From sequence record NC_019410.1: 64,000 bases of DNA; one strand, written 5' to 3'. The notes beneath the pieces were generated by a model, which was given only the letters and a program-made list of their open reading frames with translations, was not told where the DNA came from and searched no databases. Shown here piece by piece: positions 3,867-42,429 of the stretch (its first letter is position 1; every line of letters begins with the position of its first letter). The position numbers were made by a program, and so were the translations under genes.

Positions 3867-4517
3867 ATGCCGAGCTTCCACGACGTCCTGTTCCCCGAGA
3901 CTATCAGCTACGGCTCGTCAGGCGGGCCGAAGTTCAAGACCACGATCTTCCAGGCCGACAGCGGCTTTGAGCAGCGCAACAAGGACTGGAGCGACATCCG
4001 CTGCGAGTACGATGTCGCCCAGTCGATCCGCTCGACCGAGGACATGGACGAGCTTCGCGCCTTCTTCATGGCCCGCAACGGTCGCGCCCATGGCTTCCGC
4101 TACAAGGACTGGGGCGACTTCCGCCTCAAGAACCAGTTGATCGGCGTCGGCGACGGCCTCACCAAGGTCTTCCAGATCGTCAAGACCTATACCAGCGTCG
4201 CCCACGACGGCACCGAGTACACCTACACCCGCACGATCCGCAAGCCCAAGTGGGACTCGATCGCCGGCGTCAAGGTCGGCGCCGTGGTTCAGGTCGCCCC
4301 GACCAACTACGAGGTCGACTATTCGACCGGCCTGATGACCTTCGTCACCGCGCCGCCGGCCGACGCCCCGGTCACCATTGGCCTGGGCGAGTTCCACGTC
4401 CCCGTCCGCTTCGACACCGACTTCATGGACGTCACCCAGGAGTTCTGGATGCGCGAGACGTGGCCCAACATCCCGATCGTCGAAATCCGTGACTGGCAAG
4501 AGGCCCTGACGCCGTGA
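3867..4517 (+). CDS. Distal tail protein (DUF2460/TIGR02217, GTA-like)
   Basis: FP..ISYGSSGGP.F.T, FF.AR.GRAHGFR.KDW.D and F.VPVRFDTD signatures; located after the TMP. Confidence 0.85.
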   Translation: MPSFHDVLFPETISYGSSGGPKFKTTIFQADSGFEQRNKDWSDIRCEYDVAQSIRSTEDMDELRAFFMARNGRAHGFRYKDWGDFRLKNQLIGVGDGLTKVFQIVKTYTSVAHDGTEYTYTRTIRKPKWDSIAGVKVGAVVQVAPTNYEVDYSTGLMTFVTAPPADAPVTIGLGEFHVPVRFDTDFMDVTQEFWMRETWPNIPIVEIRDWQEALTP

Positions 4518-6139
4518 AATCCGTCCCCGAAGACCTGATGGCGCACCTCCAGGAGGAGGTGACCACGCTCGCGACGTGCATCACGATCGTGCGCCAGGAC
4601 GGCAAGGCGTTCTTCATGACCGACCACGATCGGCCGATCAAGTTCGAGAACCAGACCTACGTCCCCTACGACTCCTACCAGCGCACGTCGATCCTGATGT
4701 CGTCGGAACTGGAAGTCGACACCGCCGACATCACCGCCTTCCTGACCTCGAACGGGGTGACGCGCGACGACGTGGCCTCGGGCCTGTTCGACTATGCCGC
4801 GATCAAGGTCCAGTTGCTGAACTACGAGCGGCCCGAGGACGGGGCGATCCTGCTCCGCAAGGGCACGTTCGGCGAAGTGACCATGAACCAGGACGAGACC
4901 TTCTCGGCCGAAATCCGGGGCATGACCCAGGTCCTGACCTACCGGGTCGGGGAGACCTACGCGCCCGAGTGCCGGGCCGACCTCGGCGACCGCCGCTGCA
5001 AGATCGGACTGATGCCGGAGGAATGGCAGGCCAACAAATACTACGGCCTCGACGCCTGCGTGCTGGGCGAACTCGTCGCCCCTACGTCGTTCGTCAATCC
5101 CGTGGTCGTCAACGGCAACTTCGAGGACGGCGCCCTCAACGCCGTCGTCACCGCGCCGACGGGCTGGGTGGCCTATGGCGATCCGACCAGCCGCTGGGTC
5201 TACAAGCACGACTGGTACAATCTGTCTCGCCCGCAGGTCGGCAATCAGTTCATCGCCGCCACCCGCACCTCGATCTCCGACAAGCAGGAAATCGCCGGCA
5301 TCTACCAGGACATCAACCTCGTCTCCGCCGGCGTGCCCGCCGCCGCGATCGACGGCGGCCTCTGCCGCGTGCGCTACAAGTCCTTCGCCGCCTGCCTCAA
5401 CAACCGCGCCCAATCGCGCGAGCGCCTGACCTGCATCAAGGCCGACGGCTCGGTGGAGACGATCTGGGACACCGGTGAGATCAAGTACCCCGAGGACCGC
5501 TGGATCGCGGTCAACGCCGACGACGTCCTGATCCCGGCCGGCACGCGCGTCCTGCGCATCGACCTGTGGTCCAAGAAGCGCAGCGTCCACGAGGAGGGCG
5601 CGGCCTATGACGGGATCAGCCTGTCGATCAACCTGCCGGCGGGCACGGCCGGCAACGCCAACGTCTATGGCGGGGTGATGTTCAAGTGCATCCAGGCGGG
5701 GATCAGCGGCGGCACCGAGCCGGCCTGGACCAACGAACTGGGGGCCACCTATACCGACGGCACGGTCATCTGGCAGTGCGTGTCCAACTACAAGAAGGTG
5801 GGCACGGTCGCCACGGTCGCCTCCAACAAGTCGTTCACCTCGACCGACATCACCGAGCCGGCCGGTCACTATGACGGCGGCGTGCTCTACTGGGAAACCG
5901 GCCGCAACGCCGGACGCGCCCAGGAGATCAAGACCTGGGCCGCCAACCTCTTCACGCTCTTCCAGCGCACCTACTATCCGATCACGGCGGGCGACCGCTT
6001 CGTGGTCTATCCCGGCTGCGACAAGCGCCGCGCCACCTGCGCCGACAAGTTCCACAACATCCACAACTTCCGCGCCGAGCCCGACGTGCCCGGTCAGGAC
6101 ATCTACTACCGCACGCCCAACGCTCCGGAGCAGGAATGA
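4514..6139 (+). CDS. Baseplate hub protein (DUF2163/BR0599-like) with an inserted carbohydrate-binding-like module
   Basis: N-terminal TTLATC..I.R.DG....TDHDR, central CRA.LGD.RC and C-terminal GD.F..YPGCDK....C..KF.N..NFR.EP.VPG. Confidence 0.85.
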   Translation: MKSVPEDLMAHLQEEVTTLATCITIVRQDGKAFFMTDHDRPIKFENQTYVPYDSYQRTSILMSSELEVDTADITAFLTSNGVTRDDVASGLFDYAAIKVQLLNYERPEDGAILLRKGTFGEVTMNQDETFSAEIRGMTQVLTYRVGETYAPECRADLGDRRCKIGLMPEEWQANKYYGLDACVLGELVAPTSFVNPVVVNGNFEDGALNAVVTAPTGWVAYGDPTSRWVYKHDWYNLSRPQVGNQFIAATRTSISDKQEIAGIYQDINLVSAGVPAAAIDGGLCRVRYKSFAACLNNRAQSRERLTCIKADGSVETIWDTGEIKYPEDRWIAVNADDVLIPAGTRVLRIDLWSKKRSVHEEGAAYDGISLSINLPAGTAGNANVYGGVMFKCIQAGISGGTEPAWTNELGATYTDGTVIWQCVSNYKKVGTVATVASNKSFTSTDITEPAGHYDGGVLYWETGRNAGRAQEIKTWAANLFTLFQRTYYPITAGDRFVVYPGCDKRRATCADKFHNIHNFRAEPDVPGQDIYYRTPNAPEQE

Positions 6140-6561
6140 CCCGCGACGACATCGTGACCGAAGCGCGCCGCTATGTCGCGCTCCAAACCCCCTGGCGTCA
6201 TCGAGGCCGCACCGAACGCGGCCTCGACTGCATCGGGCTGGCCGTCATGATCTTCGAGAAATTCAACCTGGAATACATGGACCAGGACGGTTACGCGCGC
6301 ACGCCCGACGGCGAGAAGTTCGTCGAGGTGATCCGCCAGCACATGACCCTGGCCGATCCGACGGCGCTCAAGCCGGGCATGCTGCTGCTGTTCAACGACG
6401 ACGCCCGGCCCTGCCATGTCGGCATCCTGGCGCGCCAGCACGGACGCCTGACCCTGATCCACGCGACCGCCGACAAGAAGCGGACGGTCGAGGAAGTCTA
6501 TGACCGCCGCTATGCCGCCCGGTTCCGCATGGCCTTCGATTTCCCCGGCGTTGAGGACTAA
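6136..6561 (+). CDS. NlpC/P60 family tail-associated cell wall peptidase
   Basis: TPWRHRGR...GLDCIGL and CHVGIL motifs; GTA-like gene order. Confidence 0.9.
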   Translation: MTRDDIVTEARRYVALQTPWRHRGRTERGLDCIGLAVMIFEKFNLEYMDQDGYARTPDGEKFVEVIRQHMTLADPTALKPGMLLLFNDDARPCHVGILARQHGRLTLIHATADKKRTVEEVYDRRYAARFRMAFDFPGVED

Positions 6562-40845: not shown

Positions 40846-41722
40846 GTTTTCCGATGGGCTGAGACTACACCCATCAGCAATCCCGCTTCGAGGATTATTC
40901 CCCAGGTGCGACCCCAGGTATTCCCTCGACGTCCACCAGACCCCTTGCGGTAGTCCAGTCCGAGATCATCGCCGCCGTTCTTGCGCACCCCGAAGGGATT
41001 GCGGGTCTGGCGTTTGACCCATCATGGCGAACTACTCGACAGTTCCTTCCCCGCTGGGCTTGCGACCCACTCACCGGCGCTAACCGGCTGACGAAGCTCT
41101 TCCTATCGACACCTCGCGGGCTTGCGACCCTTGAGATGACTCCGTTACCCGAAGGCCGGAGCATTTGGCGACTTACGTCCGCCACTGGACCAGTCTTTGC
41201 GTTTTTCATCGAAGCGGGGATTGAACCCGCGACCGACAGCTTAAGAGGCTGTTGCACTACCACTGTGCTATTCGCAAACCCACCAAGACGTGCTGGTCCA
41301 GTTGTTCCCAGAGCTTTTGACCCCGGAAATGCAACACGCCTCATATCTTTCGCCTTGCGGGCTACTCGACTGCTCTTCAGGACTCCGTCTCCCCCAACCT
41401 TTCGGCCAGGATGCCCAGCACCCCTCGAACTGAAGCAAAGCTCTTCACCGCGAAGTGTCGAACCCTGCAACCCAAACGGTTATCCGTACTCCCTAGACAC
41501 GCTTGCACGGGATAGTCCGCTTGCGACGGACTGGCGGTTAAAGCCTCGGAGTTACCCCGGCCCCGCCTTGTCTCCCACGGTCTTCAGGTCTATCCCCTTT
41601 TGCAAGAGGCGGCCAGCTTCCCAGCCCGGACCCGTCGGCTTCCTCTGTCCTCTTGCGAGGTCGGGCGGCCTATGGGAGACCGTCCCTGTCACCCCGTCGC
41701 CGGGGCTTTCGTCAGAAGCGAC
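40846..41722 (-). ncRNA. GOLLD-like giant ornate RNA (~870 nt)
   Basis: Size, tRNA association, an embedded tRNA, GAGUA E-loop motifs, repeated GCAA tetraloops, and 3' motifs GAGCUUCGUCAGC and GGUGUAGUCUCA recalled from GOLLD; has its own promoter and terminator. Ends are approximate. Confidence 0.78.
41206..41277 (-). tRNA. tRNA-Lys(CTT)-like element embedded in the GOLLD-like RNA; acceptor stem broken, no CCA
   Basis: D arm GCAC-AGTGGTA-GTGC, anticodon arm ACAGC-CT CTT AA-GCTGT, T arm GCGGG-TTCAATC-CCCGC; acceptor TTGCGAA/TTCGATG has only 4 Watson-Crick pairs. Confidence 0.8.
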
Positions 41723-41813: not shown

Positions 41814-41841
41814 TTGACATTCTCGTAAGCCCATGCTAGGT
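41814..41841 (+). promoter_or_regulatory. Promoter TTGACA-N15-GCTAGG for the tmRNA
   Basis: Divergent from the GOLLD promoter. Confidence 0.65.
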
Positions 41842-41844
41842 GTC

Positions 41845-42225
41845 GGAAATCGTTGTAATTCGGACAACGGAACTGGCGGCAAGACAGGGGTGCGAATCCC
41901 CTCGCCTCCACCATCGACGCCCGGCGCTGGGAGTACGCGACTCCTGGGCAGGGAGTGTTACCCTGGCGGGCTGCGGCCCGAGCCAAAGGTAGCCGGGCGT
42001 CGTTGATGGGGGCGACTAGCTTTCGATTGGCGCTCGGGACTGAAAGACGCAACGGTGGGTGACCTCCACATCGGCTTGCCGGTGATCGGGTCAGGCAACA
42101 GTAAATGTCGCCGACAATGACAACGACGTCGTGGCTTTCGCCTCGGCTCGTGAAGCCATCGCCGCCTAATAAGCGGTAGAGGAGCCCGCCGGGAGCTTGG
42201 CAACAGAATCCCGGCAACCCCCTTT
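41845..42225 (+). ncRNA. ssrA: Circularly permuted (two-piece, alphaproteobacterial-type) tmRNA; tag ADNDNDVVAFASAREAIAA
   Basis: The acceptor piece ends T arm-CGCCTCC-A-CCA at 41913. The coding piece starts GGGGGCG at 42008, giving a G3:U70 Ala identity pair. The tag ORF at 42110-42169 ends in AA followed by TAATAA. Confidence 0.92.
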
Positions 42226-42350
42226 CGCAGGCGGGAACACCAACAGGCGATCTGTCGGGCGACCGATTTCCGATCCGTGTTCCCGTCTTCGAAAGGTGGT
42301 CAGGCCTACCCTCTTGGTGTGCTATCCAAGGGTCTGGCCACTTTACAGAA

Positions 42351-42429
42351 CGCGGGGTAGAGGAGTCCGGTTGTCCTCGTCTGGCTCATAACCAGGAGAT
42401 CGTGGGTTCAAATCCCACTCCCGCTCCCA
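42351..42429 (+). tRNA. tRNA-fMet(CAT)-like
   Basis: CGCGGGG 5' end with a C1:U72 mismatch, CTCATAA loop, TTCAAAT T loop and encoded CCA. Confidence 0.88.

Follow-up and report, generated by a model that had tools for sequence, protein, structure and literature searches.

A permuted two-piece tmRNA gene beside the tRNA-Met genes of Caulobacter phage CcrKarma

What does a lytic Caulobacter phage encode immediately upstream of its tRNA-Met genes, at a locus where the public records show tRNAs only? The question arises in a window of 64,000 nucleotides from record NC_019410.1 (the whole stretch of DNA that was analysed), in which an earlier note, made from the letters of the sequence, had recognized a phage-encoded two-piece tmRNA. 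Window coordinates plus 62,000 give those of record JX100811.1. Over the 801 bases around the gene, the window matches Caulobacter phage CcrKarma (JX100811.1) and Ccr5 with 100% identity; phiCbK, Magneto, Swift and other Shapiroviruses follow with 98-99%. The GenBank record of CcrKarma, as well as its RefSeq version, annotates only tRNAs at the locus and lacks the tmRNA, and the records of some relatives place hypothetical proteins there. According to the original genome paper, Rfam gave no functional RNAs besides tRNAs (PMC3556154). A protein-coding reading was considered, with open reading frames overlapping the locus on both strands, and was rejected in view of single-base insertions and deletions among the relatives and of the evidence for an RNA.

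A circularly permuted tmRNA gene spans approximately positions 41848-42240 of the window on the plus strand. ARAGORN calls a permuted tmRNA at 41821-42260, and the Rfam family RF04321 (tmRNA_permuted) matches positions 41851-42169 over its full model (1-213), with 71.9 bits against a gathering score of 47 bits and an E value of 7e-12 for the 64-kb window. This match is far above chance, and 12 relatives score 64-90 bits with the same model. The check that had been proposed beforehand, by ARAGORN or the Rfam family alpha_tmRNA (RF01849), gives a divided answer: ARAGORN supports the gene, whereas RF01849 has no match in Karma at its gathering threshold of 50 bits, and it is RF04321 that recognizes it. 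The RF01849 threshold is passed by Colossus, CcrPW and Bajun (53.5-66.8 bits), and the best clan member in a permissive Rfam scan of Karma is beta_tmRNA, with 35 bits. The identification as a phage two-piece tmRNA is thus correct, and what the phage carries here is probably a functional ssrA of its own, of the permuted alphaproteobacterial type.

The CcrKarma gene is already on record and is not new, since Table S1 of Buchholz et al. 2022 lists CcrKarma, CcrMagneto, phiCbK, CcrSC and CcrBL9 with a 'Permuted' tmRNA (PMC9004378); among 18,146 phage genomes surveyed, tmRNA was found in 402, with 53 unique two-piece forms, mostly in aquatic phages (PMC9004378). The accessible part of the supplements to a 2025 tmRNA database paper, which covers RefSeq viruses, does not mention Caulobacter, and an RNA-seq supplement for phiCbK, in which the locus is unannotated, holds no rows for phage tRNA or tmRNA. 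Classic Caulobacter phages therefore carry a ribosome-rescue RNA beside their tRNAs that was missed by their records and by the original genome paper. The tmRNA finding is an annotation correction and not a discovery, to which the conserved, structured intervening segment (IVS) adds something.

The permuted order described in the earlier note is present in the sequence: an acceptor piece with its CCA end at 41913, an IVS of 94 nt and a coding piece from 42008, all on the plus strand. The acceptor piece (41851-41913), delimited by the Rfam alignment and by helix-by-helix pair counts and with a predicted 5' end, contains the 5' strands of helix P2 (41851-41855, 41859-41863 and 41876-41882), followed by a T-arm (41886-41902) of 5 bp with a 7-nt loop, in which 5/5 pairs are formed. 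The acceptor 3' strand CGCCUCC is read directly from the sequence at 41903-41909; the discriminator A (A73) at 41910 stands directly before the encoded CCA (41911-41913), with which the piece ends. The IVS (41914-42007) lies between this CCA and G1 and is predicted to be removed at maturation. The coding piece (42008-42240) is supported by ARAGORN, Rfam and pair counts, and its 3' end is approximate, being placed at 42260 by ARAGORN. It opens with the acceptor 5' strand GGGGGCG (42008-42014), located before the D-loop analogue. The acceptor stem is paired at 7/7 positions, and the G3:U70 alanine identity pair that had been noticed earlier is present in it as G42010:U41907.

The 3' strands of helix P2 (42027-42054) follow in the coding piece, and the helices P2a, P2b and P2c, which join both pieces, are all paired in Karma. 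Pseudoknot PK1 (42055-42093) was assigned by inspection and pair counts rather than predicted by a tool; it comprises P3 (42055-42058 with 42066-42069, 4/4 pairs) and P4 (42060-42064 with 42089-42093, 5/5 pairs), and column-wise pair counts place an additional hairpin within it (42070-42074 with 42079-42083). The tag reading frame (42107-42172) runs into hairpin P5 (42161-42177), in which GCCGC pairs with GCGGU and the stop codons occupy the loop; 5/5 pairs are formed in Karma and in the relatives with the same tag end. The 3' domain of the coding piece is at 42185-42235.

A putative promoter (41814-41842, plus strand) precedes the acceptor piece, with a -35 box TTGACA at 41814-41819 and a -10-like element GCTAGGTG at 41835-41842, from which a transcript start at about 41847-41850 is predicted. 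The CTTGACA box is invariant in all phage relatives and the GCTAGG-like -10 is conserved; the spacer between them varies. The putative -10 resembles GCtANAWC, the Caulobacter sigma-73 consensus. The promoter is proposed because of this conservation and the Caulobacter consensus, and not from an E. coli-type promoter scan, which found no promoter at the locus. On the other side of the gene, between the tmRNA and tRNA-Met, the predicted fold contains a strong hairpin of 16 bp followed by UUUACAG (42296-42341, plus strand), whose role could be that of a weak terminator or of a structure for processing. Its pairing is kept in Magneto and Swift, where a G replaces an A and forms a G-U pair, and a terminator scan did not call it.

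A syntenic copy of the permuted tmRNA is found in every relative examined, namely in Shapirovirus, Poindextervirus, Colossusvirus, Brevundimonas phage Bajun and two IMG/VR contigs. The gene adjoins tRNA-Cys and tRNA-Met genes in phiCbK, BL57, BL10, RBC63, Rogue, BL64, Colossus, CcrPW, Bajun, CcrSC, CcrBL9 and the IMG/VR contig L135, and in the IMG/VR contig L189 it lies beside a GOLLD RNA. The relatives show a compensatory change in the acceptor stem (G5:C versus C5:G) and five different pair sets in the T-arm, with pairing kept. In Colossus, CcrPW and L189, helix P2a has CGUCG:CGACG in place of CGUUG:CAACG, and P2b and P2c are paired in most relatives. Column-wise pair counts reveal GUGG:CCAC versus UAGG:CCUA in P3 of PK1 and UGACC:GGUCA versus UGAUC:GAUCA in P4, along with compensatory changes in the additional PK1 hairpin, and a by-eye reading of the alignment gives the stop-codon hairpin as GGCC/GGCC in Colossus and CcrPW and as GCCG/CGGC in CcrSC. 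Compensatory changes thus keep the main helices, which shows that the gene is under selection; this is clearly purifying selection on an RNA. Five Shapiroviruses differ by 1 substitution in about 290 nt of mature RNA, compared to about 18 in the 150 nt upstream. Karma and the host ssrA share 47-62% identity in the tRNA-like and P2 regions. A minor peculiarity is found in CcrRogue and BL64 (L006 and L007), where the 3' end of the acceptor piece reads CCACCACCA, one CCA triplet more than in all other relatives.

The point at which translation would resume requires a correction. The earlier note had given the resume context as AAUGUC|GCC, with a tag frame at 42110-42172. Its letters and frame stand, and the frame indeed runs from GCC to GCC over 42110-42166, where the last sense codon ends, and closes with TAA TAA (42167-42172); the resume position itself does not, for homology favours GUC (42107-42109), one in-frame codon upstream, and GCC (42110-42112) is then the next codon. 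ARAGORN, the Rfam alignment, the alignment with host ssrA and a survey of upstream contexts all place the resume codon at GUC. Host UAAAU|GCG aligns with phage UAAAU|GUC, and host UAAAU|GCG-AAC-GAU-AAC aligns base for base with AAAU|GUC-AAC-GAC-AAC of Colossus. The survey covered the upstream 5-mers of about 150 alpha-type tmRNAs (hosts and about 95 viral), in which UAAAU, UAACU, UAGGU, UAAAC or CAAAU stands before the resume codon; UAAAU, which precedes GUC 42107 in Karma, is the 5-mer in 38 of 54 host genes and in 41 viral genes. The conserved resume context, U at -5 and A at -4, fits GUC 42107 and is not found before GCC 42110 (context AUGUC). Because of the UAAAU before GUC and the host alignment, the Karma resume codon is most likely GUC (Val), an unusual choice, and the encoded tag would in that case probably be VADNDNDVVAFASAREAIAA (20 codons). 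The frame ends in ...REAIAA, followed by TAA TAA inside the hairpin at 42161-42177.

With the leading Val left out, the tag is ADNDNDVVAFASAREAIAA in Karma, Magneto and Swift, AANDNDVVAFASAREAIAA in phiCbK, RBC57 and BL57, ASNDNDVVAYASAREAIAA in BL10, AANDNAPFAVREAIAA in Rogue, RBC63, BL64, Bajun and L135, NDNDAPVMEQLLAA in Colossus, NDNDAPVMEQRLAA in CcrPW and NAANDNDVVVSTMTSVKLAA in CcrSC and CcrBL9; the host tag, from ssrA recovered from 54 Caulobacter genomes, is ANDNFAEEFAVAA. N-D-N near the tag start and a terminal Ala-Ala are found in all 13 relatives, and the middle of the tag varies. It had been suggested earlier that the N-terminal segment bound by SspB is changed in the phage (DNDN versus NDN), and this part of the proposal proves weak. 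A single GCC/GAC polymorphism within Shapirovirus gives Asp (GAC) in Karma, Magneto and Swift and Ala (GCC) in phiCbK, RBC57 and BL57, and the Ala variant begins AANDND, as does the host tag. Since NDN and Ala-Ala are universal and the middle is variable, the DNDN of Karma is thus a one-base polymorphism and no redesign of the adaptor-binding end. The greater length of the tag, with its C-terminal Ala-Ala kept, was described correctly, Karma having 19-20 encoded residues versus 13 in the host. As a separate observation, the tag-coding stretch and stop-codon hairpin of Bajun (L009) consist of nearly the same nucleotides as in the Poindextervirus phages (compared with CcrRogue, L006), while the rest of the Bajun tmRNA has only 37-58% identity to Karma, which points to strong constraint or to exchange of the block.

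The long tag raises an alternative, in which the RNA is a functional tmRNA maintained for a phage-specific tag rather than for additional rescue. Hand-off to SspB/ClpXP or to another protease would be altered by the greater distance from NDN to Ala-Ala (14 residues, compared to 9 in the host) or by the Val/Asp start, and the rescued products would be destroyed faster, slower or selectively during infection. Tags are indeed consistently long in this phage subfamily (15-21 encoded residues; the host has 13, and most viral alpha-type tmRNAs have 10-15), and the C-terminal block REAIAA is common to Shapirovirus, Poindextervirus and Bajun though the rest of the RNA has diverged. Hersch et al. in 2004 reportedly found, with E. 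coli tags, that the spacing of the SspB and ClpX sites alters delivery. Yet the genera differ freely in the middle of the tag, Colossusvirus tags end differently (LLAA, RLAA), and the conserved parts, NDN and Ala-Ala, are both shared with the host tag, which argues for ordinary recognition. A phage-specific tag as the purpose of the gene is therefore considered unlikely, though it is the strongest of the competing explanations.

The segment between the two pieces is elaborate. The IVS folds into a closing stem of 11 bp (41915-41925 with 41992-42002) with four internal hairpins and ends with UUGAU before G1; its minimum free energy is -55 kcal/mol, with a z score of -3.8. RNAalifold finds 34 pairs in seven Shapirovirus and Poindextervirus copies, 9 of which have compensatory double changes. 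The interior is 87-98% identical between Shapirovirus and Poindextervirus, and in RBC8 and RBC11 the identity is 100% over 77 nt, compared to about 75% for the region overall; the strands of the closing stem have only 45-73% identity, and pairing is still kept. By these identities, the IVS interior is as conserved as the tRNA-like domain. It may be a recently exchanged recombination tract. The IVS copies of Colossusvirus and Bajun are unrelated sequences, closed by stems of 9-12 bp.

Among the loci fetched for comparison (L066-L185 being IMG/VR loci), the IVS is 28-33 nt long in 54 Caulobacter genomes and has a median of 82 nt (range 24-176 nt) in 111 viral contigs. In nearly all viral copies a closing stem of 9-13 bp starts 1-2 nt past the CCA, and the segment ends in YUGAU before G1. 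The Karma IVS matches no Rfam family at E values up to 1, and a viral scan with its motif returned only the same phages, so that the element is confined to Shapirovirus and Poindextervirus, which also sets it apart from other aquatic-phage tmRNAs. Its occurrence in metagenomes was considered and discarded: a single scan gave three chance matches, none with a tmRNA, and the one inspected lay in ORF-like sequence. Given a segment that is structured, conserved and, in viruses, long and stem-closed, it could be more than a spacer, acting as a phage-specific processing scaffold or as a second stable RNA that is released with a function of its own, a proposal that we put forward tentatively. No description of the conserved, structured IVS was found, unlike the gene itself. 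Two further features were seen in other viral IVS copies: a short open frame with ATG or GTG behind a Shine-Dalgarno-like motif in several marine loci (L115, L123, L078, L082 and L068), and a T-arm-like GGGTTCGAGTCCC in L071 and L182.

Rescue by a tmRNA also involves SmpB, and the earlier statement that the window has no smpB holds, and can be widened to entire genomes. A tblastn search with E. coli SmpB matched 68 of 50,697 phage records, and Caulobacter phages are absent among the matches listed and from the ten named organism groups; a motif search of the fetched loci found no smpB next to ssrA either, a weak test that the tblastn search supersedes. As no phage SmpB was detected, host SmpB must be used. 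The fit of the phage RNA with host SmpB is an assumption, because the identity to host ssrA is low in the regions concerned (see above).

In the proposed mechanism, that of an ordinary trans-translation RNA which relies on AlaRS, SmpB, EF-Tu, RNase P and ClpXP of the host, the host-type promoter would drive a precursor that possibly reads on into the downstream tRNA-Met genes, and in the tRNA-like fold the CCA 3' end would come to lie next to G1. Once RNase P had cut 5' of G42008 and the 3' end had been trimmed to CCA41913, the structured 94-nt IVS would be released. The remaining acceptor piece (about 63 nt) and coding piece (about 230 nt) would stay joined through the acceptor stem and helix P2. 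Charging by host AlaRS would occur via G3:U70, and host SmpB and EF-Tu would bring the RNA to ribosomes that have stalled on broken mRNAs. Translation would resume at GUC and add about 21 residues ending in AIAA; this end would mark the product for ClpXP, and the retained NDN would probably let SspB help. Recognition by SspB-alpha and the cell-cycle control of the host tmRNA are general background to this proposal. A plausible and likely benefit to the phage would be ribosome recycling that is kept up during infection, while host transcripts decay and the levels of host tmRNA and SmpB follow the cell cycle. The tmRNA would then form part of the phage's set of translation RNAs, together with about 26 tRNAs and the initiator-like tRNA-Met directly downstream.

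In another explanation, the RNA is a decoy which titrates host SmpB or competes with the host tmRNA and so suppresses tagging of phage proteins. Such a role has been proposed for the tmRNA of mycobacteriophage DS6A, which consists of the tRNA-like domain (TLD) only, and inhibition of tmRNA by a DS6A-like molecule has been observed in E. coli (PMC4131195; PMC11915505); this precedent and the failure to detect a phage SmpB speak for a decoy. A decoy has no need, however, for PK1, a resume context, a double-stop tag frame ending in Ala-Ala or a stop-codon hairpin, all of which are conserved, several of them through compensatory changes, and we regard this explanation as improbable. Least probable is an inert passenger, either a decaying host-derived ssrA copy or an integration-site remnant carried with the tRNA cluster, for although ssrA is a frequent integration target of islands and prophages, which carry pieces of it (PMC4383910; PMC9004378), and phiCbK-like phages encode a tyrosine recombinase (PMC3556154), the gene is complete, kept in four or more genera with compensatory changes, almost free of substitutions within Shapirovirus, and so far diverged from host ssrA that there is no long identity block for recombination. 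Conservation of the entire mRNA-like domain speaks against both the decoy and the passenger, and a functional phage ssrA remains the preferred reading.

This phage ssrA can be set beside several known systems. The two-piece tmRNA encoded by ssrA of the host, Caulobacter crescentus (vibrioides), was reportedly described by Keiler, Shapiro and Williams in 2000. The Karma gene is like it in the permuted order of acceptor piece, IVS and coding piece, in G3:U70, A73, the encoded CCA and the inter-piece helix P2, in the T-loop (UGCGAUU/UGCGAAU), in UAAAU before the resume codon and in a tag that has N-D-N close to the start and closes with Ala-Ala. It is unlike it in the IVS (94 nt and structured, versus 28-33 nt in the host), in the probable resume codon (GUC, Val, versus GCG, Ala), in the tag (19-20 codons versus 13), in the extra PK1 hairpin and in its location on a lytic phage without smpB. 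A second comparison is with Brevundimonas phage vB_BgoS-Bajun (ON529858), in which the tmRNA is annotated: it belongs to the same subfamily, has the same synteny of tmRNA, tRNA-Met, tRNA-Met and helicase, and its tag AANDNAPFAVREAIAA is the Poindextervirus tag, yet its IVS is different, with 118 nt, and the rest of its RNA is diverged to the extent given above. Caulobacter is the organism in which the two-piece tmRNA, its cell-cycle control and the SspB/ClpXP pathway were worked out, and phiCbK and Karma are therefore a convenient system for asking what a phage gains from its own tmRNA.

Aquatic phages, among them OM43 phage Melnitz and the pelagimyophages, have permuted tmRNAs (PMC9004378) that are likewise phage-borne, of the alphaproteobacterial type and two-piece, often lie beside tRNA genes and have a long, stem-closed IVS. 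The ssrA of Melnitz is coupled to a glutamine riboswitch, whereas an Rfam scan found none at the Karma locus, and the marine tags differ in having 10-15 residues and ending in ALAA. In IMG/VR, a single pattern scan matched acceptor pieces of this type in at least 120 viral contigs. Among other phages, tmRNAs are known in mycobacteriophage Bxz1 and its relatives and in Bacillus phage G (Hudson et al. 2014, PMC4131195). These one-piece tmRNAs resemble that of Karma in being complete genes of large lytic phages with many tRNAs, and differ in having the standard unpermuted form and in infecting other host phyla; they have no established role (PMC4131195).

The neighbourhood of the gene holds further RNAs. 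A full-length GOLLD RNA (RF02032, 171 bits versus a threshold of 150) lies at 40856-41342 on the minus strand, divergent from the tmRNA gene. It is not annotated in the GenBank record of Karma and has an embedded tRNA at 41205-41278 (minus strand); phiCbK and BL57 have the same arrangement of GOLLD and tmRNA. That tRNAs can lie in the linker of GOLLD is already known (bioRxiv 10.1101/2024.12.08.627333). The embedded tRNAs of Karma, phiCbK (L002, 1006-1079) and BL57 (L003, 1006-1079) are identical outside the 7-nt anticodon loop. The loop of Karma, CUCUUAA, is canonical, with the anticodon CUU (Lys), and differs at four positions from each of the other two, CGUCCUA in phiCbK and CAUCCUA in BL57, which have the anticodon UCC, are called Gly and carry U at position 37 but G or A at 33. 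Two groups are suggested by the annotations in the records, with an embedded tRNA-Lys in Karma, Ccr5, Magneto, Swift and RBC57 and a tRNA-Gly in phiCbK, Ccr2, Ccr10, Ccr29, Ccr32, Ccr34, S2L and BL57, and the sequences are consistent with a diversification of the anticodon loop that may have taken place in this tRNA.

A GOLLD RNA is also found in L189 (278,859 bp), at 4309-4776 on the minus strand, with an embedded tRNA-Ser (UGA) and divergent from the permuted tmRNA at 5975-6358 (plus strand). A general linkage of GOLLD and tmRNA was considered and rejected, as nhmmer located GOLLD only in Shapirovirus and L189 among about 130 viral tmRNA loci, using a profile built from three copies that is narrow and of low sensitivity. 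Downstream of the tmRNA, the tRNA-Met at 42351-42429 (79 nt) has a C1 x U72 mismatch, is initiator-like and appears as tRNA-fMet in the annotations of relatives; all genera examined share the order tmRNA, tRNA-Met, tRNA-Met.
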